From sequence record OQ790161.1: DNA of 64,000 nucleotides; one strand, written 5' to 3'. Below, piece by piece: positions 12,122 to 30,539 of this stretch; positions within the stretch are counted from its first letter, which is position 1, and the number at the start of each line of letters is the position of its first letter. The notes under the pieces were generated by a model. That model ran no database searches, was not told the origin of the DNA, and saw only the letters and a program-made list of their open reading frames with translations. Made by a program: the position numbers and the translations under genes.

Positions 12122-15100
12122 ATGTTCAAATATCTCAAGCTGGGAGGTCTGGATTTTCTCGAGAATCCGGAAGTAGGCCAGCATGTGACCGTGCGCACTG
12201 GTCCGGGGGACACTGACTTTGTCAATGTCTTCCTCGGTGACTTCCGCACGTTCATGACCGAACAGGTCACTGAGCGCATCGTCGATCTGGAAGAGGCCGT
12301 TGCTGGCGGCACCGGTCCGTCGGTGTGGCCGGTGGCTCGCAGTCTCTCCTTGACCGGGCTGGTAACCGGCACGGTGGCAATGGACGGTTCGCAAAACGTC
12401 TCCTTGGTCACCTCGATGGCCGACGGTGCTTTGAGCATCGCCAAAGTGGACGGACTGCAAGCGGCGCTGGACGGTAAGTTGGCCAGTACCGGTAACGCAG
12501 CAACGGCGACGCGCCTGCAAACGTCTCGCAATATCGCCCTGTCCGGTGTTGTCACCGGTACGGCTTCGTTCAACGGTTCGGCCAATGCCACCATCGCAAC
12601 TTCGATTGCCGATGGGGCGCTCTCCATTGCCAAGACCTCCGGGTTGCAGGCAGCGCTCGATACCAAGGCCAATCTGAGCGGTGCTGACTTCACCGGTCTG
12701 CTCACTGCGCGTGGTCCGGGGCTGGAAGTGTGGGCTGCTGATGGTAACGCCGATGCGGCGCTGAATGTTCGCAATCAGGCTGGGGTGCTCCAAGGCGCGC
12801 TGGCATGGGACCGGGCAACGGACTCGATGCGTTTGCGTCGTGCCTCGACTGACGGTGCTGCTACGGAAGGTGAGTTCGCGCTCTACGGTGATCGCGCAAC
12901 GATCAATGGTAACGTGCTCTACCACGCAGGTAACTTGAATGCGCAAGCGTTGAGTTATCTGTCCTCGGCTGTGACCGAGTATGTCAGTGGAGCGGGTGCT
13001 AACGCCAATGACTTCGCCGCCGGTACCAAAAACCTGGTGCACAACACCAATGCCAATACGCCCGGTGCAAGCTCGGCCTATTGGTACATCGAAACGCTGC
13101 TGACGGGTACCTCCACCAATGTGCTGATCCAACGCGCTTACTCGCCTACCCTCGATGAGCACTACGTGCGTCGTGGCAATGCGGGTGTGTGGTCGGCTTG
13201 GCGTCGTCAGTGGAACAGCTCCAACTTCGATCCGACCAGTAAGCTCGATAGCAATGCCGTGGCTGCATCGGCAACCAAGCTGCAGACGGCCCGTACGATC
13301 GCCCTGACGGGCATCGCCACCGGTACCGTAAGCTTCGATGGTACTGCCAACGTGTCCATCGCCACGAGCGTGGCAGACGGCGCTCTGTCCATTGCCAAGA
13401 CCTCCGGTCTGCAAACGGCACTGGATGGTAAGCTCAACGTGGGTCAGTACGGTCTGGGCACGGCCTCGGCCAACTACAACTGGGCAGTGGAAGTTCGTCA
13501 GTCGCAGTTTGCAGTGGGTACGACTGGTGCGCCGGAGTCGGGCAAGAACTACATGGGCATGCACGTTGTGCTCAGCCATGCCGACTACTATGCCATGGAC
13601 TTGGCAGCGCGCAACAACAAGCTGTGGTTCCAGACCACGGAGCTGGGCGTGTTGGGTACGTGGAATGAGGTTTACCACACCGGTAACTTCACTCCTGCCA
13701 ATTACGTTCCCGTCACCCGTTCAGTGCTGGCAGGCAACGGTATCCTCGATGGCGGTGCGCTCAGTGGTGATGTCACCTTGACGTTGGGTACGCCGACCAC
13801 CTTGAGTGGTTCGACGACCAATGCGGTGACCGCTGGTTCGCACACCCACGCCCTGAGTGCCAACCTGAAGGCCTGGGACGCCATTACCGTGGCTTCCAAG
13901 TTGGACGCAAGCGCTACTGCTGTTGCAGCTGCAAAGCTCGCTACGGCGCGTACGGTGGCTCTGACGGGACCTGTGACGGCCAGTGCGTCCTTTGATGGCT
14001 CGGCAAACCTGACGTTGGCCACTGCGGTGGCGGATGGTGCGTTGGCCATTGCCAAGATCAATGGTCTGCAAGCGGCACTGGACCTGTTGGCTCCCAAGGC
14101 CAACCCGACCTTCACCGGTACGGCACGTCTGCTGGGCGATCTGTTACCTGACGTGGACAATGTCCGTTCGCTGGGTGCACCGAACCTGATGTGGAAGGAC
14201 GTGTACATCGGCCCTGGGTCACTGTACATCAACGGTCAGAAGGTGCTGGAGGATAACTCCGGTACGATTCGCATGTTGGCTGATCCCAATCAGAACATCG
14301 CGATCCAGACCAGTGGTTCGGGCGACATCGAACTGGCTCCCACCGGCACCGGTGTGATTCAGATGAAGGGGACGGTCTCGTTCCTGGGTGGCTCCAAGAT
14401 CCGCTCCTCCAATGGCTCGGCACTGTTGTTCGATGAGGACATCCAGTTCAGCACTGGCACGGGCCTGATCGGTACGCCCACCATCAACGGCAACGTGATT
14501 TACCATGCGGGCAACCTGGACCTGTCCAGTACCTTCCGCATCGGTGCAGCCAATGCTGCTGACCTGCGCTTCTCCTCGGGCGATGGTCGCGGTATTCGCT
14601 TCTGGGATAACGTCAACTACTCGATTTACATGAGTGCCACCACCAATGCAAGTTTGGGTGGGCGCATCGCCGGTGAGACCACGTCTGACCACAACATGTA
14701 TTTCCGCATGGCTGCCGGGACCAACCGCGGCTTTGTGTTTGAGAACGGTTACGCCAACAAGCTGTTTGCCATCAACACCAACGGTGTGCGCTCGACCCCG
14801 TCCATCACGGCACCTTCGTTCATCGGTGCGTTGGAAGGTAATGCCGCCTCGGCCACCAAGCTGGGAACGGCACGCCAGATCTATCTGCAAAACGATCTGA
14901 CGGGTAACGCAGCCTTCGATGGCTCGACGGACATCAGTATCGCCGCCTACGCTCGTGCGTATGTCTCCGGTGGTACGGGTTCGAGTCAGGCTGGTCAGTA
15001 TGTTCGTGTGGCGCGCGCTACCATTGGTGCGCAGTACGAAGATGCGGCCATTGCATTGCAGATGCTCGGCTACAGTGACGCGGCGTCCTACGCTCGCAGT

Positions 15101-18100
15101 TGCCGTGTGCGCTTCCGCGTCAAGCAGCAAGCAACGCTGCCGGGTTTGCCGGTCGTCAATGTGGACGTGGAATCGACCAACTACATCCAGCCTGAAGAAT
15201 TCGTGGCTGTGATCGGTGATACCGCCGCCTATCCGGTGACGGTGGATCTGTATGTCAAGATGGCTGGTACCTACTCGGGCTTGAAGACGTCGGTCTTGGG
15301 TCGTGGTGGTAGCCGCACCATTCAGTTGGTGGAAAACGACGGGTACGTCACGGCATTGCCTTCCGGTACGCAAGTTCCGGGTGTGGGCGATAACGCCAGC
15401 CGTGCTTACGCCAACGCGCTCACGGCCTCCACTGTCACTGCCACGGACATCATCGGTAACCTGCAAGGTACTTTCGCTGGCACGTTGGCACGGGTGTACA
15501 ATCCGAACAACTCCGGCGCCACGATGGGAATGGAGTGGAGCAGCAATGCACCGCGCCTGCGCATCGGCGGTACGGGTTCGTATGTGGATGCCACCTTCCG
15601 CATTCAAGGCGCAAGTGACTTTGTGCGCATGTCGCTGGATGCTCAGGGTAACATGACCATTCCGGGTACGCTGACGGCTTCGGCCATCAACGGCAACCTG
15701 AACTGGAGCGGTACGCAGTACTTCGAAGCGAGTAACACCCACTTCGGCAGTAAGGCTACCAGCAATGTGCTTCTGGAAATCGGTGGGCGTGCTGGCACGG
15801 CGACCTCGACGGGCTTGGACTTCCACTCCAGTGGCGGTAACAACGACTTTGACACGCGCATCATGGCCACTGGTGGCGATGGTACGACCAACGGTGCAGG
15901 TACGCTCACGGTGTCGGCTGCGGCCTTCACGTTGACCGGTCACCTGAATCTGCCGACCAGTCGTGCAATCACCTTCGGCAGCAACAGCTCGGTTGTCCGC
16001 GACGCAGGTACGGCGGGCTTGGTCATCAGTACGGCAACGGGTGGTTACATCTATCTGCGGCCCAACGGTGATGCTTCGGCCACCAATCAGTTCGTCGTTA
16101 ACAACACTGGCGTGTCCTACGGCGGCAACGACATCTGGCATGCGGGTAACTTCAATCCGGATGGTAGGGTCGAACGTGGCACCACCGCGCTCAACCAAGA
16201 CGGTACGGTCCCGGCTGGCTTCTTTACCGATGTCGCCAATCAGCTCGCGCTGAAGATGTCCAACAACACCACTGGCTCGACGGGCTACCCGAGTGAGTTT
16301 GGTGCAACGTTGTCGGTCATCATGGGTCGTCAACCGACGCGCTCGTTCGATCTGCACGTCACTACCGGTTCGCCGAACTTCCTGTACTATCGCGGCTATC
16401 CCTCCACGGGCACTGCGGGTGGTGAATGGAAGACCATCGCGGCTTTGCAGAACGCCAACAGCTGGACCGGACTGCAGACCTTCACCAACGGTGTGACGTT
16501 TGCCAATGACAAGGTAGTCAGTCTGGGCACCGGCGGTGGCACACTGCGTGCAACCAACACCGGCAGTGTGGTGATCTCCTCGGGCACGGGTGGTAGTGGT
16601 TTTGTCTACCTGCGTCCCAATGGCGATACCGTCACCACCGGTCAGGTCGTGGTCTACGCCACCGGCGTGCTGGACGCAAGCAGCCTCAAGGCCAATGCTT
16701 CTGGCTCGGGTGCGGTGTTCTTGGAAATGGCAGGTGAGCGTGCATGGCAGTTCCGTCAGATCGGCACGGGGGCAACCTCGGGTCTGGAGCTGTTTGACAC
16801 CACTGGCGGTAAGGCCTTCCATGTCACCAGCACGTCCAACAGCAACCGCATCTCCATGGACGGCTCGCTCTCGCGCGTGACGGCCAATGAGTTCGTGGGC
16901 GCACTGACGGGCAATGCCGCAACGGCTTCCAATGCTTCGGCAGTGGGTGGTCTGGCAGCGACCTCGTTCCTGCGTAATGACGCGGCCAATTCTTCGGATG
17001 TGCGCGTTGCCTCTGGTGACGGACGTGGTTTGCGGTTCTGGGATAACGATCAGTACAAGATCTGGATGAGTGCATCGGGCACCGCTTCGACGGGTGGCCG
17101 GATCGATGGTGAAACCACCTCCGATTACAACATGTACTTCCGTATGGCCAGCGGTACCAATCGAGGCTTCGTCTTCGAGTCGACCAATGCGGCCAAGCTG
17201 TTTGCGATCAATCCCAGTGGAGTGCGTTCCACGCCGTCGATCACTGCGCCGAGCTTCATTGGTGCAGTTCGCGGTAACGCGGACACGGCCACTAAACTGC
17301 TCACCGCGCGCACCATCAACGGTGTTGCCTTCGATGGTAGTTCCAACATCACCATCGCAGTGGCCATGCCTACTTCGATCGACGTGACAGGTTCCATCAA
17401 CGCCGGCGCGAGTTTGCGCTCGGGTGGTTGGGGTGGGATCGCCACTAACGGTGTGGTGTACTTTGGTACGGCCGACAGCTACATCTTCAAGTCGGGCAAC
17501 AACTTCGCGTTCAAGAACGAGGAGGGTTCGTACACGGCCACCTTGACGTCGGGCGGCAACATCTGGACGACCAGCAACCTGACGCCGTTGGATCGCAACA
17601 CTGGTGGTTCTGTTCTCGCTACCCTGGATGTCTTCTCGGGTGCTTTCGGCACCCAGACGGGCTTGTACGGTATGGGGTACAACAACGGCGTTCGTCGTTG
17701 GTTGCACGTGATGGAATCGGACGCCTCCTACGCGCTCTACAGCTACAACACCAGCGGTGGTGGCGCCGGTCGCGTCCTCAAGATCAACAACCTCGCCAGC
17801 GGTCAATCGGCGTTTGAAGCACTTGTCGTTTGGGGCGGTATCAAATCGCTCGGCACGTCGGCCGGCTTCAGCTTGGGTGACCGTAACGGTACGGGTCCGG
17901 AATGGAGCATCTACGCCAGTGAAAGTGCCCTGCGGTTGTGGGTATCTGGTGGTGGTGATCGTTTCAGCATCAACAGTGCTGGCAATGCCAACATTGCAAA
18001 CGGACTGGTGGTGTCTGGCCGAATGGACGTGGGCAACCAGCTCTACGTGAACGCCGGTTGGGTTCGATCGCAACAGTCGGGTACGGGTTGGTACCACGAA

Positions 18101-18733
18101 GCGCATGGCGGTGGTATCTTCATGCAAGATTCCCAGTGGGTGCGAACCTACAACAACAAGGGTTTCTTGATCGCCGGTGCAGCTGGTAATGACGGCGGTC
18201 TGCGTATGGAAGGTACTTCGCCGACGGTCACCTTCTACGACACCGACTCGGGTCGTACGAACTGGCTGCACTGCAACGACGACAACATTGGCTTCTTGGC
18301 CAGTAACTCGTTCTCGTGGTGCTCCTACCGTGACGGTAGCAACAACTGGATCACGGTGGGCAACATCGTGGGCTACGCTTCGGATGAACGTCTGAAGACC
18401 GGCATTGATTTCGTTGATCGTCAGATCCCGACGGACTTCTTCGACCGCTTCCGCGTTCGTGAGTTCGACTGGAACTACGAGGCGATTGCCAAGTTGAATC
18501 CGGACTTCAAGCCGATTGCCGATCACGAAGTTGGTGGTATTGCGCAGGAGGTGGAGGAGATCTACCCGTTCATGGTGACCACTCACCAGAACACGGGCAT
18601 CAAGACCATCATGTGGGACAAGGCGGTCCCGCTGTTGATCTCCGAAGTGCAGGAGCTGCGTAAGCTCAAGCCGGTGGTGGATGAGTTGCTGGGACGTCTG
18701 GCAGCTCTGGAAGCCAAGGTGGGAGGTGCGTAA
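12122..18733 (+). CDS. Long tail fibre (2203 aa) with C-terminal peptidase S74 chaperone
   Basis: Repeated ATKLxTARxIxLxG...FDG..DGALSIAK..GLQxALD modules and internal duplications; C-terminal ASDERLK...VGGIAQEVEE...YPFMV. Confidence 0.92.
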   Translation: MFKYLKLGGLDFLENPEVGQHVTVRTGPGDTDFVNVFLGDFRTFMTEQVTERIVDLEEAVAGGTGPSVWPVARSLSLTGLVTGTVAMDGSQNVSLVTSMADGALSIAKVDGLQAALDGKLASTGNAATATRLQTSRNIALSGVVTGTASFNGSANATIATSIADGALSIAKTSGLQAALDTKANLSGADFTGLLTARGPGLEVWAADGNADAALNVRNQAGVLQGALAWDRATDSMRLRRASTDGAATEGEFALYGDRATINGNVLYHAGNLNAQALSYLSSAVTEYVSGAGANANDFAAGTKNLVHNTNANTPGASSAYWYIETLLTGTSTNVLIQRAYSPTLDEHYVRRGNAGVWSAWRRQWNSSNFDPTSKLDSNAVAASATKLQTARTIALTGIATGTVSFDGTANVSIATSVADGALSIAKTSGLQTALDGKLNVGQYGLGTASANYNWAVEVRQSQFAVGTTGAPESGKNYMGMHVVLSHADYYAMDLAARNNKLWFQTTELGVLGTWNEVYHTGNFTPANYVPVTRSVLAGNGILDGGALSGDVTLTLGTPTTLSGSTTNAVTAGSHTHALSANLKAWDAITVASKLDASATAVAAAKLATARTVALTGPVTASASFDGSANLTLATAVADGALAIAKINGLQAALDLLAPKANPTFTGTARLLGDLLPDVDNVRSLGAPNLMWKDVYIGPGSLYINGQKVLEDNSGTIRMLADPNQNIAIQTSGSGDIELAPTGTGVIQMKGTVSFLGGSKIRSSNGSALLFDEDIQFSTGTGLIGTPTINGNVIYHAGNLDLSSTFRIGAANAADLRFSSGDGRGIRFWDNVNYSIYMSATTNASLGGRIAGETTSDHNMYFRMAAGTNRGFVFENGYANKLFAINTNGVRSTPSITAPSFIGALEGNAASATKLGTARQIYLQNDLTGNAAFDGSTDISIAAYARAYVSGGTGSSQAGQYVRVARATIGAQYEDAAIALQMLGYSDAASYARSCRVRFRVKQQATLPGLPVVNVDVESTNYIQPEEFVAVIGDTAAYPVTVDLYVKMAGTYSGLKTSVLGRGGSRTIQLVENDGYVTALPSGTQVPGVGDNASRAYANALTASTVTATDIIGNLQGTFAGTLARVYNPNNSGATMGMEWSSNAPRLRIGGTGSYVDATFRIQGASDFVRMSLDAQGNMTIPGTLTASAINGNLNWSGTQYFEASNTHFGSKATSNVLLEIGGRAGTATSTGLDFHSSGGNNDFDTRIMATGGDGTTNGAGTLTVSAAAFTLTGHLNLPTSRAITFGSNSSVVRDAGTAGLVISTATGGYIYLRPNGDASATNQFVVNNTGVSYGGNDIWHAGNFNPDGRVERGTTALNQDGTVPAGFFTDVANQLALKMSNNTTGSTGYPSEFGATLSVIMGRQPTRSFDLHVTTGSPNFLYYRGYPSTGTAGGEWKTIAALQNANSWTGLQTFTNGVTFANDKVVSLGTGGGTLRATNTGSVVISSGTGGSGFVYLRPNGDTVTTGQVVVYATGVLDASSLKANASGSGAVFLEMAGERAWQFRQIGTGATSGLELFDTTGGKAFHVTSTSNSNRISMDGSLSRVTANEFVGALTGNAATASNASAVGGLAATSFLRNDAANSSDVRVASGDGRGLRFWDNDQYKIWMSASGTASTGGRIDGETTSDYNMYFRMASGTNRGFVFESTNAAKLFAINPSGVRSTPSITAPSFIGAVRGNADTATKLLTARTINGVAFDGSSNITIAVAMPTSIDVTGSINAGASLRSGGWGGIATNGVVYFGTADSYIFKSGNNFAFKNEEGSYTATLTSGGNIWTTSNLTPLDRNTGGSVLATLDVFSGAFGTQTGLYGMGYNNGVRRWLHVMESDASYALYSYNTSGGGAGRVLKINNLASGQSAFEALVVWGGIKSLGTSAGFSLGDRNGTGPEWSIYASESALRLWVSGGGDRFSINSAGNANIANGLVVSGRMDVGNQLYVNAGWVRSQQSGTGWYHEAHGGGIFMQDSQWVRTYNNKGFLIAGAAGNDGGLRMEGTSPTVTFYDTDSGRTNWLHCNDDNIGFLASNSFSWCSYRDGSNNWITVGNIVGYASDERLKTGIDFVDRQIPTDFFDRFRVREFDWNYEAIAKLNPDFKPIADHEVGGIAQEVEEIYPFMVTTHQNTGIKTIMWDKAVPLLISEVQELRKLKPVVDELLGRLAALEAKVGGA

Positions 18734-19203
18734 TGCCCCTCCCCACTTCTGGAACGCTCAGTTGGGAAATGATTCGCAATGAATTTGGTGGAGGCAACCC
18801 TGTCTACATCAGTCAGTACTATCGCGGTGCCGGTCGTGTACCGAACATCCCCGAGAATGCTGGCGTTCCCACCAGTGGTCCCATCTACCTGCATCAGTTC
18901 TACGGTGCGCGTGCCCAAGGGCAGAGTCCGCTCAGTGTCACTGCCCCTGACGTGTTCAACCAAGTCAACAACGGTACAGCCTCAGGTACGTCGGTGGCCA
19001 GTGGCGCTGGTGGCACAGGGGGTTACACCTACACGTGGGCCAACAACACCGGTGGTGCATCGATGGGCGTTAATGGCGCAGGTGCGACGTTCTCCTCTGG
19101 TCGTTCAGTAACTGGTACCGCCACGGTCACGGTACGTGACTCGTCCGGTGCCACAGCCACCAAGACAATCTACGTCGAACTGACCGTGGGTCGTCCTGTT
19201 TAA
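18733..19203 (+). CDS. Putative fibre-tip adhesin (docking module plus Ig-like domain)
   Basis: 156 aa, coupled to the long fibre by TAATG. N-terminal SGTLSW..IRNEFG..P..ISQYYRG...VPTSGPI....FYG module; C-terminal GGYTYTW...TVTVRDSSG beta-sandwich. Confidence 0.65.
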   Translation: MPLPTSGTLSWEMIRNEFGGGNPVYISQYYRGAGRVPNIPENAGVPTSGPIYLHQFYGARAQGQSPLSVTAPDVFNQVNNGTASGTSVASGAGGTGGYTYTWANNTGGASMGVNGAGATFSSGRSVTGTATVTVRDSSGATATKTIYVELTVGRPV

Positions 19204-19713: not shown

Positions 19714-19757
19714 GCATAGCGTAGAGAGGAGCTTCGGCTCCTCTCTATTTTATGTCC
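19714..19757 (+). terminator. Hairpin with GCATAG / TTTTATGTC flanks
   Basis: GCATAGCG-TAGAGAGGAGC-TTCG-GCTCCTCTCTA-TTTTATGTC. Confidence 0.85.
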
Positions 19758-19775
19758 TTCATGGTAGCGACCTTT

Positions 19776-20234
19776 ATGGCTCTTGGCACTAACCCCAGTT
19801 TCTCGCAGATCCGTGCGTTCTTTGGCGGATCCAACAATTTCAAGGACTACTATCGCGGCGGTCCTTACGTTCCCAACATTCCAGCCAACAACGCCATCCC
19901 GACATCGCCGGCCGGCATGTCCATGCGGCAGTTCTCTGGTGCTGACAAGAACGTGAGTGGCCCGTTGAGCGTCACTGCACCTGACGTGTTCAACCAAGTC
20001 AATAACGGTACAGCCTCAGGTTCGTCTGTAGCGAGTGCGTCGGGTGGTGCAGGCGGCTATACCTATACCTGGGCCAACAACAGTGGGGCCACGATGAGTA
20101 CCAATGGTGCAGGCGCCACGTTCTCTGCGACGTCCTCTCGGTCCGGTAGCGCTACGGTCACGGCACGTGACTCCTCGGGAGCTACCGCAACGAGGACGAT
20201 CGTCGTTGAGTTGACGGTGGGGCGCCCTGTTTAA
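19776..20234 (+). CDS. Second putative fibre-tip adhesin, paralog of 18733-19203
   Basis: Likely start ATG 19776 (the track starts at 19752). N-terminus SFSQIRAFFGG..FKDYYRGGPYVPNIP; the last ~91 aa are about 80% identical to those of 18733-19203. Confidence 0.65.
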   Translation: MALGTNPSFSQIRAFFGGSNNFKDYYRGGPYVPNIPANNAIPTSPAGMSMRQFSGADKNVSGPLSVTAPDVFNQVNNGTASGSSVASASGGAGGYTYTWANNSGATMSTNGAGATFSATSSRSGSATVTARDSSGATATRTIVVELTVGRPV

Positions 20235-20307: not shown

Positions 20308-20886
20308 ATGACTTTACGGACCTCTTGGCCGCCTACTGACTCTTATCAAGGCCACGTACCTATGGGCAATCCACCACCCACCGATCGACGCTTCGATAAG
20401 CCTGCAAGCGAATCGCTCGTTGATCTGATCAACTACAGCAACAAGACGTATATCCAGTACGGCGAGATCGAAGGCGACCAAGTCGCTCCGTTCGCCGGAG
20501 GTGCGATGTATAACACCTCGGTGCGCATTTGCCTTGCGGGCATGAGCAACAGTGGTCCGCATTCCAAGATGACCTACGGGCGCTTGGACATTGGCCAGTA
20601 CCTGCCGGAACCGGACCTGTTCACCTACGACACCGTGGCCGATGCCAGCGGACTGTTCCAACAGCTGCGCGATCGCCATCATATCTGGTTGGACGGGGAC
20701 GACTGCAAGATCATCATCGGGGAACTCGATTCCGCCGGACTTCGTTCCATCGTCTTCATTCCCAAAGCCGACCACTACGTGTGGACCGGACAGTTGGTGG
20801 TGAGGGCTGCCTTGAAGAACCATCTCCAGCGCTTCATCACCGAGCGCACCCTGCTGGGTTTCTCCAGACCACAGCTGGAATTGTAA
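20308..20886 (+). CDS. phiKZ-like virion structural protein
   Basis: 192 aa with LVDLINYSN...YGRLDI...VWTGQL and a terminal TLLGF motif. Confidence 0.65.
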   Translation: MTLRTSWPPTDSYQGHVPMGNPPPTDRRFDKPASESLVDLINYSNKTYIQYGEIEGDQVAPFAGGAMYNTSVRICLAGMSNSGPHSKMTYGRLDIGQYLPEPDLFTYDTVADASGLFQQLRDRHHIWLDGDDCKIIIGELDSAGLRSIVFIPKADHYVWTGQLVVRAALKNHLQRFITERTLLGFSRPQLEL

Positions 20887-23051: not shown

Positions 23052-23660
23052 TTAGATGGCTTGCAACTGGACGTGCGGTGTCTTCTTCATGGCCTTGGCC
23101 ACCTGCGAGAGGATGGCAGTGGGCTCACGGTAAGTACCGTACTCCTTCATGTACTCCGACTCGATACGACGCTTGGCTTCCATGCGCTTCTTGCTCGGCC
23201 GCCAGCCGAAGATGCCCCAGGCACGCACAGCGGTGAACATGACGCCACGTTCGAACCAATGAACGCCAGCCACCTTCATCGCATCGCGGAAGATATGGTC
23301 AGCTTGCTTGCGGGAGATCTCATACGGGATCTCATCGCGGAACATGGTCTTGGTTTCGCACAGGATGTCATGCAGCACGGCGGCTTGACCGTAGCGGCCC
23401 CACGGTGGCAGGATCCACCACAGCGGCTTGGGCACACTGGCACCGTCAGTCAGGAAGCCAGCCGGCACGTAGCCCCACACGTTGCGTTCTGCTTCGCTGA
23501 GGTAGTACCGGAAGGATTTGGTGACCTTGAAGTAGGTCTTCCCCAACACTTTGGAGGCCACCTCATCTTTCTCCACCGACAAGTCGGTATCGAAGTTGGT
23601 GAACGCCTCAGCTTCCTTGAGCAAGGTCGCCGTGGGGACATACGGGGTGTTGATGATCAT
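23052..23660 (-). CDS. DUF1353-family protein
   Basis: Likely start ATG 23660, 202 aa; VPAGFLTDGASVPKPLWWILPPWGRYGQAAVLHDILC...ADHIF..AM signature. Confidence 0.85.
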   Translation of the reverse strand: MIINTPYVPTATLLKEAEAFTNFDTDLSVEKDEVASKVLGKTYFKVTKSFRYYLSEAERNVWGYVPAGFLTDGASVPKPLWWILPPWGRYGQAAVLHDILCETKTMFRDEIPYEISRKQADHIFRDAMKVAGVHWFERGVMFTAVRAWGIFGWRPSKKRMEAKRRIESEYMKEYGTYREPTAILSQVAKAMKKTPHVQLQAI

Positions 23661-23685
23661 TGAATGCTCCACGGAATAAAAGAAC

Positions 23686-23707
23686 CGGGGGAGGTTGCCC
23701 TCCCCCG
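23686..23707 (-). terminator. Hairpin downstream of the Hint-domain gene
   Basis: CGGGGGAGG-TTGC-CCTCCCCCG, with T-rich sequence following on the minus strand. Confidence 0.7.
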
Positions 23708-23718
23708 ATACGGTGCAG

Positions 23719-25053
23719 TTATGCCAGCTGCTTCTGGTTGGACATGTTGTGCGTTGCGATACGACGATCGCCGCGCTCACCAGCGAAGTAACTCTGGTCA
23801 TCCACGTTGAATAGGACCACGTCACGCACACCGACGAACTCGATGAAGCGTACCGGCTCCCAACGCAACTCGCCTTGGTCGTTGACGAAGACGTCTTCGT
23901 TGAGCATCTCCGGTCCGAACATCTTGCACGAGCCATCGCGCATGGTCATCGGGGTGGACTCCGACGCCACGATCGAAATACCCGACTCGGTGGTCAGACG
24001 GTAGCACGGTTGCGGCATCACTGCATTGGCACGAACCTGACGCGGAACCATCGTGTCGGGGTTGTAAGCCGACCCGTCGATCCAATCGTCAATGGCAATG
24101 TCCGATGCCAACCGCTCATCGTCCATGTACATCGTCGTGGCCACGCAGCCGCCACCACCACCACCGCCTCCGCCCCCTCCGCCACCACCGCCTCCGCCAC
24201 CACCCGATTCGGGCGTGATGATGTCCAGATCACAGAACTCGCAGTTCATGTTGAACAGGTAACGGAAGTTGGCGACCACGTTGCCATTGCGCTTGATCAA
24301 CACGCGGAACCAGCCGCGGTTGTAAATACGCAACACTGCATTGGGATCGCGGTAGGCCGAGTTGTTAGCCAAGGTGGTCATGTCAAGCGTCAGGTCCAAC
24401 GCACGGTCGGTGTTGACCGGCATGTCGTTACCTGCGCCAGCCACAGAGGTGTTGGAGTTGTTGAACTGACCGGGCACGCCCGGCTGCCACGACCACGTCG
24501 CCGGATTGGCCGGCTTGGGGATCCACCAACGTCCGTTCTCCTGGGTTTCCAGTTGATAGGAGATGGTGTATGCGTCGCCGAAGTCGCCGCGCGGAGACTG
24601 GGCCCAGTTACCCGAAGCGACCGTGCGGCCTTCCGGATACAGGTAACCCAGCTGACCGCCGCCGGAGCGCACCACACGTGCGGTGAAGTTACGGGTGGAC
24701 TGCCAGATGTCCCAGGTGCCGTTACGACGGAACGTCAAGACCACACGCTGGATGCAGTGGGCCACGTGCCACTGGGTAGAAGGACAGGTCGACCACGGAC
24801 CGTCGTAGGTACCGATGTCACCCATCGGCTGGGTGTAAGAGACCGTGCCCTTACCTGCCCAGTAGTTGGCCAAGTCCGTACCGTTGCTGTCGTAGTGCCC
24901 CACATCGCCAATGCGCGACCCCGCCGAAAGCGGGGCGTAGCGCAACTGCTGTCCATCGGGGCGGAAGAATCCGCCCGCTTGGGGACCGCCTTCATCTTGC
25001 TCGAAGATGTCGTCGAAGTCCTGCCCGGCGCCGTTGTAGAAATAGGTGGTCAT
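23719..25053 (-). CDS. Putative fibre-tip protein with G19 linker and C-terminal Hint (intein-like) domain
   Basis: 444 aa. N-terminal DFDDIF...RYAPLSAGSRIGDVG...DLANYWAGKGT module, a W-rich middle domain, 19 Gly (24148-24204), then a 134 aa domain from CVATT to ATHN with QPCYRLTTESG and GVRDVVLFNV, followed by MSNQKQLA. Confidence 0.8.
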   Translation of the reverse strand: MTTYFYNGAGQDFDDIFEQDEGGPQAGGFFRPDGQQLRYAPLSAGSRIGDVGHYDSNGTDLANYWAGKGTVSYTQPMGDIGTYDGPWSTCPSTQWHVAHCIQRVVLTFRRNGTWDIWQSTRNFTARVVRSGGGQLGYLYPEGRTVASGNWAQSPRGDFGDAYTISYQLETQENGRWWIPKPANPATWSWQPGVPGQFNNSNTSVAGAGNDMPVNTDRALDLTLDMTTLANNSAYRDPNAVLRIYNRGWFRVLIKRNGNVVANFRYLFNMNCEFCDLDIITPESGGGGGGGGGGGGGGGGGGGCVATTMYMDDERLASDIAIDDWIDGSAYNPDTMVPRQVRANAVMPQPCYRLTTESGISIVASESTPMTMRDGSCKMFGPEMLNEDVFVNDQGELRWEPVRFIEFVGVRDVVLFNVDDQSYFAGERGDRRIATHNMSNQKQLA

Positions 25054-25063
25054 GGTAACCTCC

Positions 25064-27142
25064 TTATTTGCTTTCCAGCGCGGCCAGACGAACCAGCAGC
25101 GATTGGATCAGGTCATCTTGCTGAGCGACCTTTTCGTGCAGCGCATCCACTTCCTGACCGGCCTTGTAGGCCATCTCGAAAGCAGCACCGGTGTTGTTCA
25201 CCGCCAGACGCTTGCACTTACGGCGACCGATACCATGGTCGTACTCGATGACCAGATCCGGAGCCACACGTTGCATGTCCTGTGCCACCGGACCGTGCTG
25301 CTTCTCACCAGTGTCCTTCATCTCCCACTGCTTGTAGTCGAAACTACGCCAGAGGGGACGAGCGTCCAGCTTACGGATACCGGTCTTCAGGCGCTTGTCC
25401 GAGGGCTGGAAACCAGCGCCGGCAATTGCACGGCCGTTGTGGACCACGTAGTTACCGCTGGCCTGGAACTGGAAGTAACGCGAACCAGCCACACGCAGCG
25501 AGATCGAACCATCACCGTCCTGATACAGGTAGCCGCTGTTGCCGATGACCAGTGTGTTCAGCTGGGCGTTGGAACCAACCACCACACGCTGATCGATCTG
25601 AGCCTGCAACGGATTGACCGCACGCGCCTGCACCAACTGCGCGGTGCGCAGCGGGGTCATGTACACGGTGTTGGCCCCGCCACCTTCAGCGTCGCCTTGC
25701 GAGGCGATGCCGTAGTTCTGCACGTTACCCAGATTCACCTGTGCGGCAGTGGTGCCGTGCGGGTTGTTGGTATTGTTGATGTGGCCGTTGATCGAGTTGG
25801 TCAGTGGCGTCACAGCCTGGGCGGTGATCGCTTCCTTGGTCCGCAGCGGCGTCATGTACGTCGCATTGTCCGCACCGGCCTGTGCCTGCGCCGTCGAGGC
25901 AATACCGTAGTTCTCCACGTTGCCCAGGTTGACCTGTGCTTTGGTGGTACCGTGAGGATTGTTGGTATTGTTGATGTGCGCGGTGAACTGCGAACCCACA
26001 GCACTGTCGATCAGCGACTTGGTGGTCGCCGGCGTCATGAACAGGTTCGTGGCCGTGCCAGCTTGCGCTTGGGCCGTGGTGGCCGTCAGGAAGTTGTCCA
26101 CGTTGCCGAGCTGGACTTGGGCCTTGGTCGTGTTATGCGGATTGTCCTGACGAGCAATGTGCGCATTCAACGGAGCCAGTGCCAGCGCCGTGATTGCAGC
26201 ACCGGTGAGGGTAGCAGTCATGTACGCTTCACCCACGCCGGCCTGTGCCTGAGCGGTGGTGGCCAGACCATAGTTGACCACGCTGCCCAACTGAACCTGG
26301 GCTTTGGTCACGCCATGGGGATTGTCGACACGCGCGATGTGCGCGTTCAGCGGAGTGACCGCCTGGAAGGTGATCGCTTCTTTGGTACGCAACGCGGTCA
26401 TGTAGACGTTGTTGGCCGTACCAGCCGTGGCTTGCGCCGTGGTTGCGATCCCGTAGTTTTCCACCGACCCCAGCAGCACTTGGGCCTTGGTGACCTGGTG
26501 CGGGTTGCTGACGTTGTTGATGTGGTCGTTGATCTGCGAGTCCAGCGAGGTGATCAGTGCGCGCAGCTCATTGTCCTTGAGGTCAATGTACTGACGCAAT
26601 TCATCGAACGCTGCCTGGTCGCCCAGCAAGATCGCACGACGGATCTGTTCCAACACGGCCACGAGATACTCGAAGCCGTAGAGGTCACCGATGTCATGCA
26701 AGTGAGCGGTGGGCGGGAAGTACTCGGGAGCACCGATCAGATCGCCCCAGTACACGGTGCGGTTGTCCAGATCCAGACCTTCGATCATGTCCTCGATCGA
26801 GGACACCGAAGCGGAGTAGGTACCACCGATGGCCTGGTAGTCGATCTCGATGTCCGTGGCCCGGCATTCGGGCAGGATGATCACGACCGAACAGATTTCC
26901 TGACCAGCACGCAGCGAGGCTTCGAGGAACATGTGGACCGGACGGTAATCCACGTCCGGTACCAGCACTGCGCTGGTGACCTTGTTGCGGACGACCATCC
27001 CACGGGTGTAGAACGGACCACGAGTGGTCACGAAAGCTCGGGTTCCGGTAGCTGCAACAACGTGCAGCTCAGCGGTCACCTTATTGGTGACCGCAGTACC
27101 GGAGAGATCGAGCGGGAGTTGAATTACGGGAGGGGTACTCAT
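25064..27142 (-). CDS. phiKZ-type tail fibre (gp145/146-like N-terminus) with five ~61-aa NPH repeats and C-terminal S74
   Basis: LPLDLSG...N.V..E.H...GPFY...DYQAIGG N-terminus; NPHxxTKAQVxLG repeats; PSDKRLK...GPVAQD. Confidence 0.85.
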   Translation of the reverse strand: MSTPPVIQLPLDLSGTAVTNKVTAELHVVAATGTRAFVTTRGPFYTRGMVVRNKVTSAVLVPDVDYRPVHMFLEASLRAGQEICSVVIILPECRATDIEIDYQAIGGTYSASVSSIEDMIEGLDLDNRTVYWGDLIGAPEYFPPTAHLHDIGDLYGFEYLVAVLEQIRRAILLGDQAAFDELRQYIDLKDNELRALITSLDSQINDHINNVSNPHQVTKAQVLLGSVENYGIATTAQATAGTANNVYMTALRTKEAITFQAVTPLNAHIARVDNPHGVTKAQVQLGSVVNYGLATTAQAQAGVGEAYMTATLTGAAITALALAPLNAHIARQDNPHNTTKAQVQLGNVDNFLTATTAQAQAGTATNLFMTPATTKSLIDSAVGSQFTAHINNTNNPHGTTKAQVNLGNVENYGIASTAQAQAGADNATYMTPLRTKEAITAQAVTPLTNSINGHINNTNNPHGTTAAQVNLGNVQNYGIASQGDAEGGGANTVYMTPLRTAQLVQARAVNPLQAQIDQRVVVGSNAQLNTLVIGNSGYLYQDGDGSISLRVAGSRYFQFQASGNYVVHNGRAIAGAGFQPSDKRLKTGIRKLDARPLWRSFDYKQWEMKDTGEKQHGPVAQDMQRVAPDLVIEYDHGIGRRKCKRLAVNNTGAAFEMAYKAGQEVDALHEKVAQQDDLIQSLLVRLAALESK
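25590..26524 (-). repeat. Five ~61-aa HxxxxxNPHxxTxAQVxLGxVxN repeats
   Basis: Read directly from the translation of 25064-27142. Confidence 0.9.
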
Positions 27143-27173: not shown

Positions 27174-30100
27174 TTAGGTCGTCACGACCGTCGGGTTCTC
27201 ACGGCTGTACGCCTCGACCAAGATCGGGCGGAGACGGCCGTTGCGCTGGGACTGATACATCACACCGTTCCAGTCGCTGAAGTACAGACGGTTGGGGCGA
27301 ACCAGCGGGTTGTTGAGACCCAGGTAGGTCATTTCCCACGCCGAGCCGTTGTAACGGTAGAAGCGCTGCTTGTCGTTGTCGGCGGCGATGCCCGTACGGA
27401 CATAGTCACGGTAACGACGCGGACGGGTCAGCACCTTGAAGGTGACCTTGGGCTGACGCACGGAGATCACACCCCACGTGGTGGGACGATCCACCAGCGG
27501 TGCCAGGGCCGGAACAGCAGTCAGGTCGATCACCACGCGAGCGGTGGTCGGGTAGGTGGTTGCACCGAACTCGGACACGTCCACCGTGATGATGCTGCCT
27601 GCACGCACAGCCTTGATGCGGACCTTGCCGGCGGTGTTCCAACCGTTGCCCGCGTCCACGAAGGTTGCCGGGTCACGTGCATCGTTGGGCACATCCGTGT
27701 CGGACCACATCAGCGAGCCGTTCTTGGAACCCAGGTCCACGCCATCGGCTTGACCGATGTGGAGTGCGACCGTGTGCAGCTTGTAGGCGAAGCTGGAGGG
27801 TACGCCTTGGACCTTGGTCAGGCCGCCGGGGGTACGCACCACAGCGATCGATACCGGACGGTTGGCGATCGTTGCCGAAGCCACGATGACACCTGCGCCG
27901 TTAGCCTTCAGATCCGTCGAGCTCAGCTCCACCTCGATGGTGTAGTTCAGCGATGCTTCGTTGGCCAGCAGCATTGCGTTGCCATCCACCGTGTCGGTGT
28001 CCAGCAAGATGCCGGCGTTGGTTGCATCCCAGCCCCACTTGTCCAGGATCGGCAAGTCGTTGTAGAGCCAGTTGGAACCTTGTGCCGAATACGGAATGAA
28101 GCTACCGTAATCCTCACGCAGGTTCTGCTCGATCGCCTGGACCTCGGTCTCTTCCGCAGCCGAACTGGCCACCGACACCCACTCCACCAGCGAACCGTTG
28201 AGCTGCTCAGCGTTCTGCGTGTTGGGCAGTTCACCGTAGGGCAGATCACCGAAGTACGCACGCTGACGCGCGTAGGGCGGCAGGTTGATGGTGAGGTAGT
28301 TGATACCGGTCGGTTCAGCGTCCAGCACCGTATTGGTGTTGGTGAAGAACTTATCGCCTTGCGAGACAGCGGCCACCGAGATGGGCTGACGACCCGACGG
28401 GCCACGTGCGAAGACCTTCAGTTCCGTACCGCCGGAGACCGGAGCGGTGGTGTAGCCGAAGCTGACCACGCGGCTGTAGTTCTCCACTTGTGCAACGACG
28501 GTGGAGAAGGACAGGTTTCGCAGAGCGATACGCAGCTGGAAGGACGGGGAGGCGCCATCGAAGGCCGACTCACCACCGGTCACATTGGCGACCAGATCCG
28601 GCAGAGGGTTGGTGGCGATGTTGGCGGGGATGACCATCGTACCCAACAGGGTCCACGTGTCGGTCGCACCGGCCACCGGGGACGGATACACTTCCACGCT
28701 CTTGGCATTGCCGATCACTTCAGCGTAGGTCTTGCCATCGAGCTTGCTCGAGTCAGCAGCCTTGGCCGTGCTGCCCAGCTTGCCTGCCAGTGCGGTGTCC
28801 ACCTGTGCGGTGGTGTAAGCGCCGACCTGTGCAGCCGTGGTGTTGTGCGGATTGCTCGTGCTGGCGGCGTGCTGCGCGTAGGCATCACCCACCAGAGCCA
28901 TCACCGCTGCCTTCGTACCGGCCGGGGTCACGTACAGGTTACTGGCCGTACCGGTCACGGTCTGGGCATTGGTTGCCGTGCCGTAGTTGTTGACCGAACC
29001 CAGCTGCACCTGATCCTTGGTCACTTCGTGCGGGTTGGCCAGATCGGCCTTGTGCGCATTCAGTGCCGCCGTGGCATCACCGCCGCCACCACCGCCGAGG
29101 GCATCGAACAACGCCTTGGTGGTTGCCGGGGTCATGAACAGGTTGGTCGCCGTACCGGCAGTTGCCTGCTGAACGGTCGCCGTGGAGAAGTTATCCACGT
29201 TACCCAACTGCACTTGCGCCTTGGTGGTGCCGTGCGGGTTGGAGCTGTTGTTCAAGTGCGACTGCAACGAGTTCCCCACCAGCGCGGTGATCGCTTGCGC
29301 GGTGCGCAGGGGCGTCATGTAGCGGTTGGCGGCGGTACCGGCTTCCGCTTCAGCTTGGGAGGCGATGCTGTAGTTCTGCACACTGCCCAGCTGGATCTGC
29401 GCGGCCGTCACGTTGTGCGGGTTGGCCATGTTGTCGATGTGCTCGGTCACGCCTTGCAGCGCGATGGCAGTGATCGCTTCACGGGTCATGGCCGGAGTCA
29501 TGTACAGCTCGTTGCTGGTACCTGCACGAGCCGCCACGACATCGGCGATACCGTAGTTGAGTACGCTACCCAGTTGGACCTGTGCCTTGGTCACGGCGTG
29601 CGGGTTGTCCACACGCGCGATGTGCGCGTCCAGACGAACGCCCACCAGTGCCTGGATGGCATTGGCCGTACGGACCGGAGTCATGTAACGGTTGTTGGCC
29701 GTACCCGCTTCCGCTTCGGCCTGCGTGGCCGGGGCGTAGTTCTCCACCGAGCCCAACTGAACCTGAGCCTTGGTGGTGTTGTGCGGGTTGTTGCTGTTGT
29801 TGACGTGCGAGTCCAGCGCATTGCCGATCAGGGCTTGGACCAGCTGTGCACCACGCAGCACCGTGAGGTACTTGGTTGCACTGGTACCAGCCTGGGCTTC
29901 GGCCACGGTGGCCACGCCGTAGTTCTCGACGTTGCCGAGATTGACCTGCGCCTTGGTGACTTGGTGCGGGTTGCCCTTGTCTGCGATGTGCTGCAGCAGG
30001 CCACCTTCACCGGAGGCAATCAGGGCGTCACGGATGCCTTCCAGCACTTCCACGACTTCCTTCATGCCCACCATGTCATCCAGGTGCCAGTCGTGATCGA

Positions 30101-30539
30101 TCGGCGGGAAGGCATAGGGAAGATCCGCGACCTGTTCCCAGGTGACGCGGCGGGGGTTGACCAGCTTGTTGGACAAGATCTCGACGATCTTCTGCGAGTT
30201 CAGGGTCCAGTCGCCGCCCAGCGTCTGGTACTCCATGCGCACAGCGCCGGTGAGGCGGTTGTCGAAGAAGGTGATCGAACCGTAAATCGGCTTGGCACAG
30301 GCCAGAGAAGCATCGTGGAACAGATGCGTCGGCATGTAGTCAACGCCCTCAACGAGCGAACGCTGACTCGGCAGATGCACGATCTTCATCGACTCGGCGA
30401 AGAAGGGCGTCGCCTGAGGGATGATGTAAAGGAACTCGGACAACTCCGGTGGGGAGATGGTCTGATGCTCCGCCGTGATTTTGTTCGAAGCCAGCGTGCC
30501 GCTGGGATCGAACGGATACGCAATGGTTGCGTTGCTCAT
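27174..30539 (-). CDS. phiKZ-type tail fibre (gp145/146-like) with six full NPH repeats plus one partial
   Basis: YPFDPSG...NKI..E...PFF...EGVDY...YQTLGG...V.WEQV..LP..FPP..H N-terminus; no S74 at the C-terminus. Confidence 0.85.
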   Translation of the reverse strand: MSNATIAYPFDPSGTLASNKITAEHQTISPPELSEFLYIIPQATPFFAESMKIVHLPSQRSLVEGVDYMPTHLFHDASLACAKPIYGSITFFDNRLTGAVRMEYQTLGGDWTLNSQKIVEILSNKLVNPRRVTWEQVADLPYAFPPIDHDWHLDDMVGMKEVVEVLEGIRDALIASGEGGLLQHIADKGNPHQVTKAQVNLGNVENYGVATVAEAQAGTSATKYLTVLRGAQLVQALIGNALDSHVNNSNNPHNTTKAQVQLGSVENYAPATQAEAEAGTANNRYMTPVRTANAIQALVGVRLDAHIARVDNPHAVTKAQVQLGSVLNYGIADVVAARAGTSNELYMTPAMTREAITAIALQGVTEHIDNMANPHNVTAAQIQLGSVQNYSIASQAEAEAGTAANRYMTPLRTAQAITALVGNSLQSHLNNSSNPHGTTKAQVQLGNVDNFSTATVQQATAGTATNLFMTPATTKALFDALGGGGGGDATAALNAHKADLANPHEVTKDQVQLGSVNNYGTATNAQTVTGTASNLYVTPAGTKAAVMALVGDAYAQHAASTSNPHNTTAAQVGAYTTAQVDTALAGKLGSTAKAADSSKLDGKTYAEVIGNAKSVEVYPSPVAGATDTWTLLGTMVIPANIATNPLPDLVANVTGGESAFDGASPSFQLRIALRNLSFSTVVAQVENYSRVVSFGYTTAPVSGGTELKVFARGPSGRQPISVAAVSQGDKFFTNTNTVLDAEPTGINYLTINLPPYARQRAYFGDLPYGELPNTQNAEQLNGSLVEWVSVASSAAEETEVQAIEQNLREDYGSFIPYSAQGSNWLYNDLPILDKWGWDATNAGILLDTDTVDGNAMLLANEASLNYTIEVELSSTDLKANGAGVIVASATIANRPVSIAVVRTPGGLTKVQGVPSSFAYKLHTVALHIGQADGVDLGSKNGSLMWSDTDVPNDARDPATFVDAGNGWNTAGKVRIKAVRAGSIITVDVSEFGATTYPTTARVVIDLTAVPALAPLVDRPTTWGVISVRQPKVTFKVLTRPRRYRDYVRTGIAADNDKQRFYRYNGSAWEMTYLGLNNPLVRPNRLYFSDWNGVMYQSQRNGRLRPILVEAYSRENPTVVTT
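28820..29990 (-). repeat. Six full plus one partial ~61-aa NPH repeats
   Basis: Read directly from the translation of 27174-30539. Confidence 0.9.

Follow-up and report, generated by a model that had tools for sequence, protein, structure and literature searches.

Self-removing C-terminal modules on phage fibres have so far been known mainly as S74 intramolecular chaperones. Bacterial intein-like (BIL) domains, which share the Hint fold with inteins and Hedgehog proteins, reportedly cleave or ligate without a nucleophile at the +1 position, a property that studies by Amitai (2003), Dassa (2004) and Aranko (2013) are said to describe. For the BIL2 domain of Tetrahymena BUBL, splicing is reported to run through "the nucleophilic lysine" in the C-extein and to yield an isopeptide (PMC8616854). 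Here we describe a gene of Xanthomonas phage RTH11, a jumbo myovirus of 312 kb, whose product ends in a predicted Hint domain that appears to work most like an A-type BIL or a BIL2 domain, by analogy with these systems. The gene lies in a stretch of 64,000 nucleotides from sequence record OQ790161.1 (the window, to whose first letter all positions refer unless stated), and its product (WJJ55140.1, record positions 209722-211053, 100% identity) is annotated there as a "hypothetical protein". The last 161 residues of this protein form a cassette of glycine linker, Hint domain and short lysine-bearing tail. This cassette represents an unannotated and widespread C-terminal Hint module of phage tail proteins, distinguished by an SxxT block B and an invariant tail lysine, with a predicted self-processing activity. 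The layout of the protein is as follows.

23719..25053, minus strand: RTH11 tail-fibre accessory protein gene, 444 aa, ATG start, stop codon at 23719-23721
24676..25038, minus strand: N-terminal module, residues 6-126, PHROG 11610
24205..24795, minus strand: Trp-rich, all-beta middle part, residues 87-283, 10 Trp (5.1%)
24148..24204, minus strand: 19-Gly linker, residues 284-302, in mixed codons (ggt, ggc, gga and ggg)
23746..24147, minus strand: Hint (intein-like) domain, residues 303-436, 134 aa, assigned from the AlphaFold2 model, Foldseek and the family
24145..24147, minus strand: Cys303, Hint position 1, predicted nucleophile
23953..23964, minus strand: S364-E-S-T367, counterpart of block B, reading SxxT where TxxH is usual, with an invariant Pro next to it
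23746..23751, minus strand: His435-Asn436, the C-terminal Hint motif
23722..23745, minus strand: tail or micro C-extein MSNQKQLA, 8 residues
23731..23733, minus strand: Lys441, at +5 from the Asn, candidate acyl acceptor and the family-invariant tail lysine

An initial annotation of this stretch, made from the letters alone, had described a protein encoded directly downstream of an S74-terminated fibre, with a Trp-rich middle domain, 19 consecutive glycines and a 134-residue domain running from a Cys (24147) to a His-Asn (23746) before a final MSNQKQLA, and had read the block-B motif TxxH as SEST. Each of these elements was recovered where it had been placed: the glycine run occupies exactly residues 284-302, the ten Trp fall within residues 87-283, and SEST corresponds to residues 364-367. 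Because the glycine codons are mixed, the run is not a simple DNA repeat. The residue at -1 is Gly302 and that at +1 is Met437, which offers no nucleophile.

Fold of the C-terminal domain

The assignment of the last 142 residues to the Hint fold rests on structure prediction. An AlphaFold2 model built from a 14-sequence alignment gave a predicted local distance difference test score (pLDDT) of 92.3 and a predicted template modelling (TM) score of 0.86 for the Hint domain, with disorder confined to the last six residues. When this model was compared with the PDB using Foldseek, 47 matches were returned at E<=1e-3, all of them inteins, BIL domains or Hedgehog Hint domains, at TM-scores of 0.55-0.81. 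The top match was the MchDnaB-1 intein (E 7e-7), and the Ssp DnaB mini-intein (TM 0.80-0.81) and the gp41-1 intein were also among them. The Hint fold, for which the initial annotation had proposed exactly such a structure search, is therefore confirmed at the level of a predicted model.

Sequence methods do not see this relationship directly. Scans of the whole protein, its N-terminal part and the last 142 residues against Pfam and NCBIfam left the domain unmatched even at E<=10, and PHROG likewise yielded no Hint match, whether for the protein as a whole or for its separate parts. The Pfam Hint, Hint_2, PT-HINT and Intein_splicing models and the NCBIfam models matched none of 10 diverse family members at E<=1. 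A sequence search of the PDB returned only glycine-linker artefacts for the whole protein, such as the linkers of single-chain variable fragments, and nothing significant for the Hint domain alone. A clean profile of the family, searched against PDB sequences, recovered inteins as six of its 12 matches, all weak (E 0.09-1.7), and we therefore regard RTH11-type domains as a distant branch of the Hint superfamily, beyond the reach of present sequence models. In two independent profile alignments, with the PhoCDC21-1 and NpuDnaB inteins and at sub-threshold E-values, Thr367 aligns with the His of block B and Ser364 with its Thr, in agreement with the earlier reading of SEST. Close matches in BFVD were confined to unnamed or "uncharacterized" proteins of 448, 285, 912 and 410 aa, the first three of which agree in length with homologues in phages LucasX, XacN1 and DLP_6, although BFVD does not name them.

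The family and its conserved positions

To define the family, the 142-residue query was searched with phmmer against 1.84 billion representative proteins, clustered at 50% identity. At E<=1e-3 this returned 542 clusters, of which 137 also passed E<=1e-10; homologue searches restricted to individual regions added nothing new. The carrier proteins vary in length from roughly 100 to 3431 aa, and nearly always the match extends to within a few residues of the C-terminus. Conservation was assessed in an alignment of the domains of 157 retrievable members and the RTH11 query (158 rows). Hint position 1 is Cys in 146/151 sequences and Ser in 4/151 (members P0115, P0123, P0135 and P0146). The penultimate His is present in 158/158 and the terminal Asn in 155/158, so that the Cys start and His-Asn end by which the domain was originally recognised are conserved family-wide. 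In block B, the Ser at query residue 364 occurs in 152 of the 158 sequences, and the Thr-Pro at 367-368 in all, so that every sequence has Thr where the block-B His would stand. SxxT is thus a fixed trait of the family and not the decay of one copy.

At +1, Ile, Ala, Pro or Val is found in 103/157 members and Ser or Thr in 18, while Cys occurs in none; the Met of RTH11, noted from the outset as non-nucleophilic, as in cleavage-type or BIL domains, is in keeping with this. The tail after the Asn is 3-11 residues long in 148/157 members, and in no member is it 0-2 residues. Ahead of the domain, 94 of 117 members have at least five Gly among the 20 residues that precede Cys1 (mean 7.7). A Gly-rich linker is therefore a family feature, of which the 19-Gly run of RTH11 is an extreme case. 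At -1, 56 members have Gly and 20 have Trp, which may mark two mechanistic subtypes. One protein outlines the unit: in P0018 (1560 aa), residues ~1269-1552 hold tandem Hint cassettes, in which His-Asn-A-I-K is followed by G-P-G-G and then by the Cys of the second Hint, and from this arrangement we take the cassette to consist of linker, Hint and lysine tail.

The tail lysine is a feature beyond those listed in the initial annotation. A Lys is present in 148/148 short tails, at +3 to +6, as the next-to-last residue in 106 and the last in 21, against a background of just 2.6% of residues in the short-tail carrier proteins. Typical endings are x-x-Y-K-P, Q-Q-M-K-P and V-L-K, and the tail Lys is also present at 19/19 viral-contig and phage loci. 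Five long-tail members that keep the His-Asn have their Lys at +3 to +5, whereas in P0033, P0052 and P0079, which end in His-Thr or His-Ile and have lost the Asn, the nearby Lys is gone and the tails are 23-26 residues long. Since one other long-tail member keeps His-Asn and has its first Lys only at +13, the Asn and the tail Lys co-vary largely rather than strictly.

The short tail also bears on two other readings of the domain. HINT domains act as the releasing protease in polymorphic toxins, which can bear tail-fibre-like repeats (PMC3482391), and inteins of terminases and polymerases make up many of the weaker BFVD matches. A HINT that releases a toxin and a canonical intein that splices the halves of a host protein were accordingly considered, and we give either next to no chance. 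Just eight residues follow the Asn in RTH11, the tails of most members are similarly short, no PT-HINT or intein Pfam model was matched, and the +1 residue is Met here and Cys in no member. With no downstream domain to release or join, both were rejected on sequence.

A second alternative is that the Hint fold is kept without its chemistry, as a compact structural or receptor-binding beta domain. The distal C-terminus is the usual site of receptor binding, for instance on a central fibre resembling lambda J, and a domain in this position could serve such a role. We nevertheless think this highly unlikely, because the Hint catalytic positions and the tail Lys are near-invariant, the domain is attached through a floppy Gly linker, and it is missing from orthologues. 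It is also better conserved than the rest of its carriers, across unrelated tail proteins: identities of Hint and carrier were 77% vs 61%, 74% vs 48% and 49% vs 28%, with the Hint higher each time, the opposite of the pattern expected for a receptor-binding tip.

Comparison with described systems

Among described systems, A-type BILs, represented by the C. thermocellum BIL (2lwy), share with the RTH11 domain the Hint fold (Foldseek rank 6, TM 0.75-0.77), Cys1, a His-Asn end, the lack of a +1 nucleophile and residence in variable, non-conserved proteins of the surface or of host interaction. Identity to 2lwy is 15%, with no hidden Markov model match, the models compared having included none specific to BILs. 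Unlike A-type BILs, the RTH11 family has an SxxT block B, a Gly-rich linker in front and a Lys-bearing tail of 3-11 residues, and it is nearly always found at the extreme C-terminus, on phage tail proteins. BIL2 (6y75/6tmm) is similar in fold (Foldseek ranks 9 and 12, TM 0.74-0.76), its upstream partner ends in Gly, and its nucleophilic C-extein Lys may be paralleled by the tail Lys described here. BIL2, however, retains its block-B His (H69) and sits between complete ubiquitin-like domains, whereas the RTH11 C-extein is a micro-peptide and its N-extein a phage tail protein.

Hedgehog Hog/Hint resembles the RTH11 domain in fold (1at0, TM 0.77), in a Gly-Cys junction whose upstream product ends in Gly, and in a C-terminal Hint that is discarded. 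In Hedgehog the Hint lacks the terminal Asn and is followed by a region that recognises sterols, whereas the RTH11 domain ends in His-Asn and has only the eight-residue tail behind it, with no region for sterol or adduct recognition. Class-1 mini-inteins such as Ssp DnaB and gp41-1 are the best fold matches (TM up to 0.81), with the same Cys1 and His-Asn and a similar presence/absence polymorphism between orthologues. The RTH11 Hint differs from them in lacking the +1 Cys/Ser/Thr and the block-B His, in having a C-extein of a few residues, and in not being inserted at a conserved site of an essential enzyme. PT-HINT domains differ in that no toxin domain lies 3' of the RTH11 Hint.

The nearest functional analogue in phage biology would be the Peptidase S74 chaperone, likewise a C-terminal self-removing module on tail fibres. 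The two are unrelated in fold and in chemistry: S74 uses a Ser-Lys dyad and forms a trimeric folding nucleus, while the RTH11 module is predicted to act as a monomeric Hint through a thioester and Asn cyclisation; the 444-aa protein gave no PF13884 match. A role of the Hint as a folding nucleus is also unlikely, since a flexible Gly linker parts it from its carrier, whereas S74 abuts the shaft. Membership among canonical inteins, Hedgehog Hog domains, PT-HINTs and S74 chaperones therefore fails on the features that define each, and the A-type BIL and BIL2 domains remain the closest models for a predicted activity.

Proposed mechanism

We favour, with moderate confidence, the view that the module is a self-excising cassette of the BIL type. 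After translation, Cys303 would attack the carbonyl of Gly302 in an N-S acyl shift to give a thioester. The thioester would be resolved by the epsilon-amine of Lys441, forming an isopeptide in the manner of BIL2 from the Tetrahymena BUBL locus, or else by water, and cyclisation of Asn436 would cut the Asn436-Met437 bond. The outcome would be a freed Hint of 15.2 kDa and a mature protein of 32.7 kDa that ends in the Gly arm, the end of which would be either free or capped, via the Lys, by the octapeptide. The pattern of residue conservation is that expected of an active Hint with both junctions in use. Cys or Ser at position 1 in 150/151 sequences argues that the N-terminal junction is used, the lack of a +1 nucleophile excludes canonical splicing, and the invariance of the tail Lys suggests that its epsilon-amine resolves the thioester. 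Given self-excision, we put this lysine route at roughly even chances. A more far-reaching proposal, to which we hold tentatively and which we judge doubtful, is that the +1 Cys/Ser/Thr and block-B His of a Hint have been swapped for a Lys in a micro C-extein of 3-9 residues, which would splice the Gly end of the tail protein through an isopeptide or, when a better amine is nearby, transfer it to a partner virion protein or the host envelope. If true, the distal ends of tail proteins would be armed with a single-use ligation warhead that needs no ATP.

Several observations weigh against self-excision. The block-B His, which is normally essential for the N-S shift, is missing family-wide, and RTH11 has Gly at -1. 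When the Ssp DnaB M86 intein lost its block-B His, only bulky residues at -1 could compensate (PMC6333167); the 20 members with Trp at -1 fit this rule and RTH11 does not. Thioester formation may consequently be slow or take another route. The tail Lys belongs to the terminal stretch that was modelled with low confidence (model residues 137-142, pLDDT under 50) and its spacing from the Asn is not fixed, so that its service as a nucleophile is something we infer from conservation and from the parallel with BIL2. The papers on XacN1 and LucasX, in which we sought virion-proteome information on the homologues, contain none, and what a phage would gain from a removable domain is not apparent.

These same observations raise the alternative that the N-terminal junction is inert and that Asn436 cyclisation merely clips off the octapeptide, leaving the Hint on the virion by its Gly tether. 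The family-wide Thr in place of the block-B His, the failure of a -1 Gly to support the N-S shift in the His-less DnaB intein (PMC6333167) and the near-invariance of His-Asn would all be accommodated. We consider this quite unlikely, since position 1 is conserved as strictly as His-Asn, which needs explaining if the N junction is idle; clipping a few tail residues brings no obvious effect, and the invariant Lys would fall in the piece that is thrown away. The initial annotation had likewise anticipated that the N-terminal thioester might form weakly with C-terminal Asn cyclisation dominant. That expectation gains from the absence of the block-B His and loses from the conservation of position 1, which speaks for a junction that is used and not merely weak. 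On balance we retain self-excision at both junctions as the preferred reading.

Carriers and Hint-less relatives

The Hint protein had been viewed as a peculiarity of a fibre tip. Instead, the module belongs to a large C-terminal family on many kinds of tail protein; the carriers are tail proteins of highly diverse types. They include a central fibre resembling lambda J (FNIII-A_GpJ and Phage-tail_3), DUF4815/PKD proteins of 1768-1824 aa, of which that of DLP_6 (1824 aa) adjoins the baseplate wedge in a 168-kb phage, a PHROG 376 "tail protein", and proteins that share the N-terminal PHROG 11610 module of RTH11, for example in PhiXhv-15. In XacN1, ORF231 (L025:5581-6438) is a Hint carrier of only 285 aa; upstream of it, ORF232-235 are unannotated hypothetical proteins, one of which has 528 aa and the other three 430-434 aa, and the XacN1 paper reports no tail fibres.

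The module is not always present. An orthologue of the RTH11 protein, P0004 (282 aa, L027:6001-6849, on a 40-kb contig of GCA_011800935.1), is 51-52% identical across the N-terminal part and lies in a syntenic block encoding proteins of 1021, 627 and 282 aa and a DUF1353 protein. It ends at the position aligned with query residue 282, just ahead of the linker, without linker, Hint or tail, and its stop codon is only 95 nt from the DUF1353 gene. The module from linker to tail is therefore dispensable, which weighs against the essential Hedgehog-style ligation that had been entertained for it.

A scan of genome contigs with a narrower alignment found the Hint in three Xanthomonadales genomes. 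On the S. maltophilia Sm46PAILV contig (L022:4888-8079) the locus lies among genes for phage head, tail and internal virion proteins, in a podophage-like block where a nozzle-type tail protein (PHROG 376) is split into two open reading frames (ORFs). The first corresponds to nozzle profile positions 4-275 of 712 and ends in linker, Hint and Lys tail; the next is the C-terminal half of the nozzle, at profile positions 280-709. This nozzle-subunit carrier has many Hint-less homologues in CP2-like Xanthomonas podophages, and no phage record among the matches covers its Hint part. In CP2 ORF19 (L029:2501-3892), a Gly-rich stretch is followed by N-VQQEAL where the Hint carrier reads His-Asn-IQQMKP, a difference suggestive of an empty site or of the scar left by a deletion. 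Taken together, the cassette seems to be an optional add-on, repeatedly gained and lost on phage tail proteins, and to behave like an intein-like element or a removable pro-domain and unlike a receptor-binding part.

The nozzle arrangement bears on a further alternative, in which the nucleophile that resolves the Gly302~Cys303 thioester sits on another molecule, for example as a Lys or the N-terminus of a neighbouring virion protein, or as a hydroxyl or amine on the host envelope, so that the tail protein becomes covalently attached by its C-terminus in a Hedgehog-like or BUBL-like conjugation. In S. maltophilia the Hint ends the first of two consecutive nozzle subunits, and in PhiXacm4-11, a relative, about 6 A separate the Gly-rich C-terminus of gp30 from the N-terminus of gp31 (bioRxiv 10.64898/2026.02.16.706137), a geometry that would suit such a transfer. 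BIL2 joins its upstream domain to Lys of other proteins besides its own C-extein (PMC8616854), the Hedgehog Hint 1at0 is among the fold matches, and a long, flexible Gly arm is suited to reaching a target. We still regard ligation in trans as unlikely. The Lys in cis is always a few residues from the active site and would compete. Hint-less orthologues or homologues occupy the same genomic position, so that covalent attachment cannot be essential, and the carriers are structurally so diverse that no common acceptor is evident.

The remainder of the protein and its gene neighbourhood

The N-terminal part (residues 1-283, ahead of the Gly run) links the protein to tail fibres by similarity. Its PHROG 11610 module is common to the RTH11 protein, the PhiXhv-15 protein, also a Hint carrier, and Smp_22 of phage Smp131. 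Residues 23-131 match Smp_22 (E 1e-13), whose gene directly follows the tail-fibre gene of that P2-like phage, and this supports a fibre-associated role. A location at the fibre tip, and with it the label of "fibre-tip adhesin", is likewise suggested by gene order and by the similarity to Smp_22. The middle part, residues 87-283, had no family or fold match. The AlphaFold2 model of residues 1-283 was poor (pLDDT 60), and a fold search with it gave nothing credible, the best match having E 0.02 and TM below 0.2.

The gene is the last of a fibre block, and the signals and genes around it are as follows.

25059..25064, minus strand: Shine-Dalgarno AGGAGG, 5 nt 5' of the ATG, overlapping the stop codon of the upstream fibre gene
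23684..23709, minus strand: terminator-like hairpin (11-bp stem and T-run), just 3' of the stop codon
25064..27142, minus strand: fibre protein of 692 aa, upstream, with an intramolecular chaperone (Peptidase_S74) at its end
27174..30539, minus strand: 1121-aa tail or virion structural protein, first of the fibre block
23052..23660, minus strand: DUF1353 / PHROG 1158 "tail assembly chaperone", beyond the terminator

The fibre block thus comprises the 1121-aa protein, the 692-aa S74 fibre and the 444-aa Hint protein. PF13884 (Peptidase_S74) was matched in the 692-aa fibre at residues 581-631 (25250-25402, E 3.9e-9), which bears out the S74 terminus ascribed to it. In LucasX the gene order is identical and a terminator is annotated at the equivalent place. 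The DUF1353 gene was considered as a partner specific to the Hint and rejected, because its place beside the Hint-less orthologue shows it to be independent of the Hint. An ORF on the plus strand at 23875-25251 was dismissed as a high-GC shadow, as it is the minus-strand ORF that owns the ribosome-binding site, the terminator and the homologues.

Elsewhere in the window, a 2203-aa fibre protein (12122-18733, plus strand) has Peptidase_S74 at its end (E 5e-8), and with the 692-aa protein this gives RTH11 at least two S74-processed fibres besides the Hint protein. Downstream of this giant fibre gene lie two small paralogous ORFs, 18733-19203 (plus strand, 156 aa) and 19752-20234 (plus strand, 160 aa), whose C-terminal halves are near-identical and which had no family match. 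A "docking" N-terminus shared between the first of these and the Hint carriers P0011-13 was unsupported (E 0.33) and was discarded. Between the two fibre blocks, a 192-aa ORF (20308-20886, plus strand) matches DUF7941 (E 6e-12). A second copy of the Hint was sought within the window and none was found.

Discussion

In our searches of the literature we found no account of this family, most subscription journals lying outside their coverage. What these searches returned on Hint or intein-like domains in connection with phage tails was confined to inteins of terminases and other enzymes, the HINTs of polymorphic toxins, and S74 chaperones, and it contained no tail protein of the present kind, in line with the earlier statement that no characterised phage adhesin is known to work this way. 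Hint annotation is also absent from the public records that we examined. Because the Pfam and NCBIfam models and these records all miss the Hint, genome annotation does not flag the domain.

If the proposed activity is correct, the cassette would constitute a second class of self-removing module on phage tail proteins, chemically unrelated to S74 and widespread, with at least 542 clusters at 50% identity. For intein chemistry, it would provide a natural family that works without a block-B His and without a +1 nucleophile, and with an invariant Lys; both the activation of the N-S shift and the resolution of the thioester become directly testable on a small soluble domain. The gain and loss of the cassette at the ends of tail genes bears on the movement of modules between phages. 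The cassette would, in addition, mark the mature C-terminus of many host-recognition proteins, which matters wherever receptor-binding domains are read from sequences or predicted structures.

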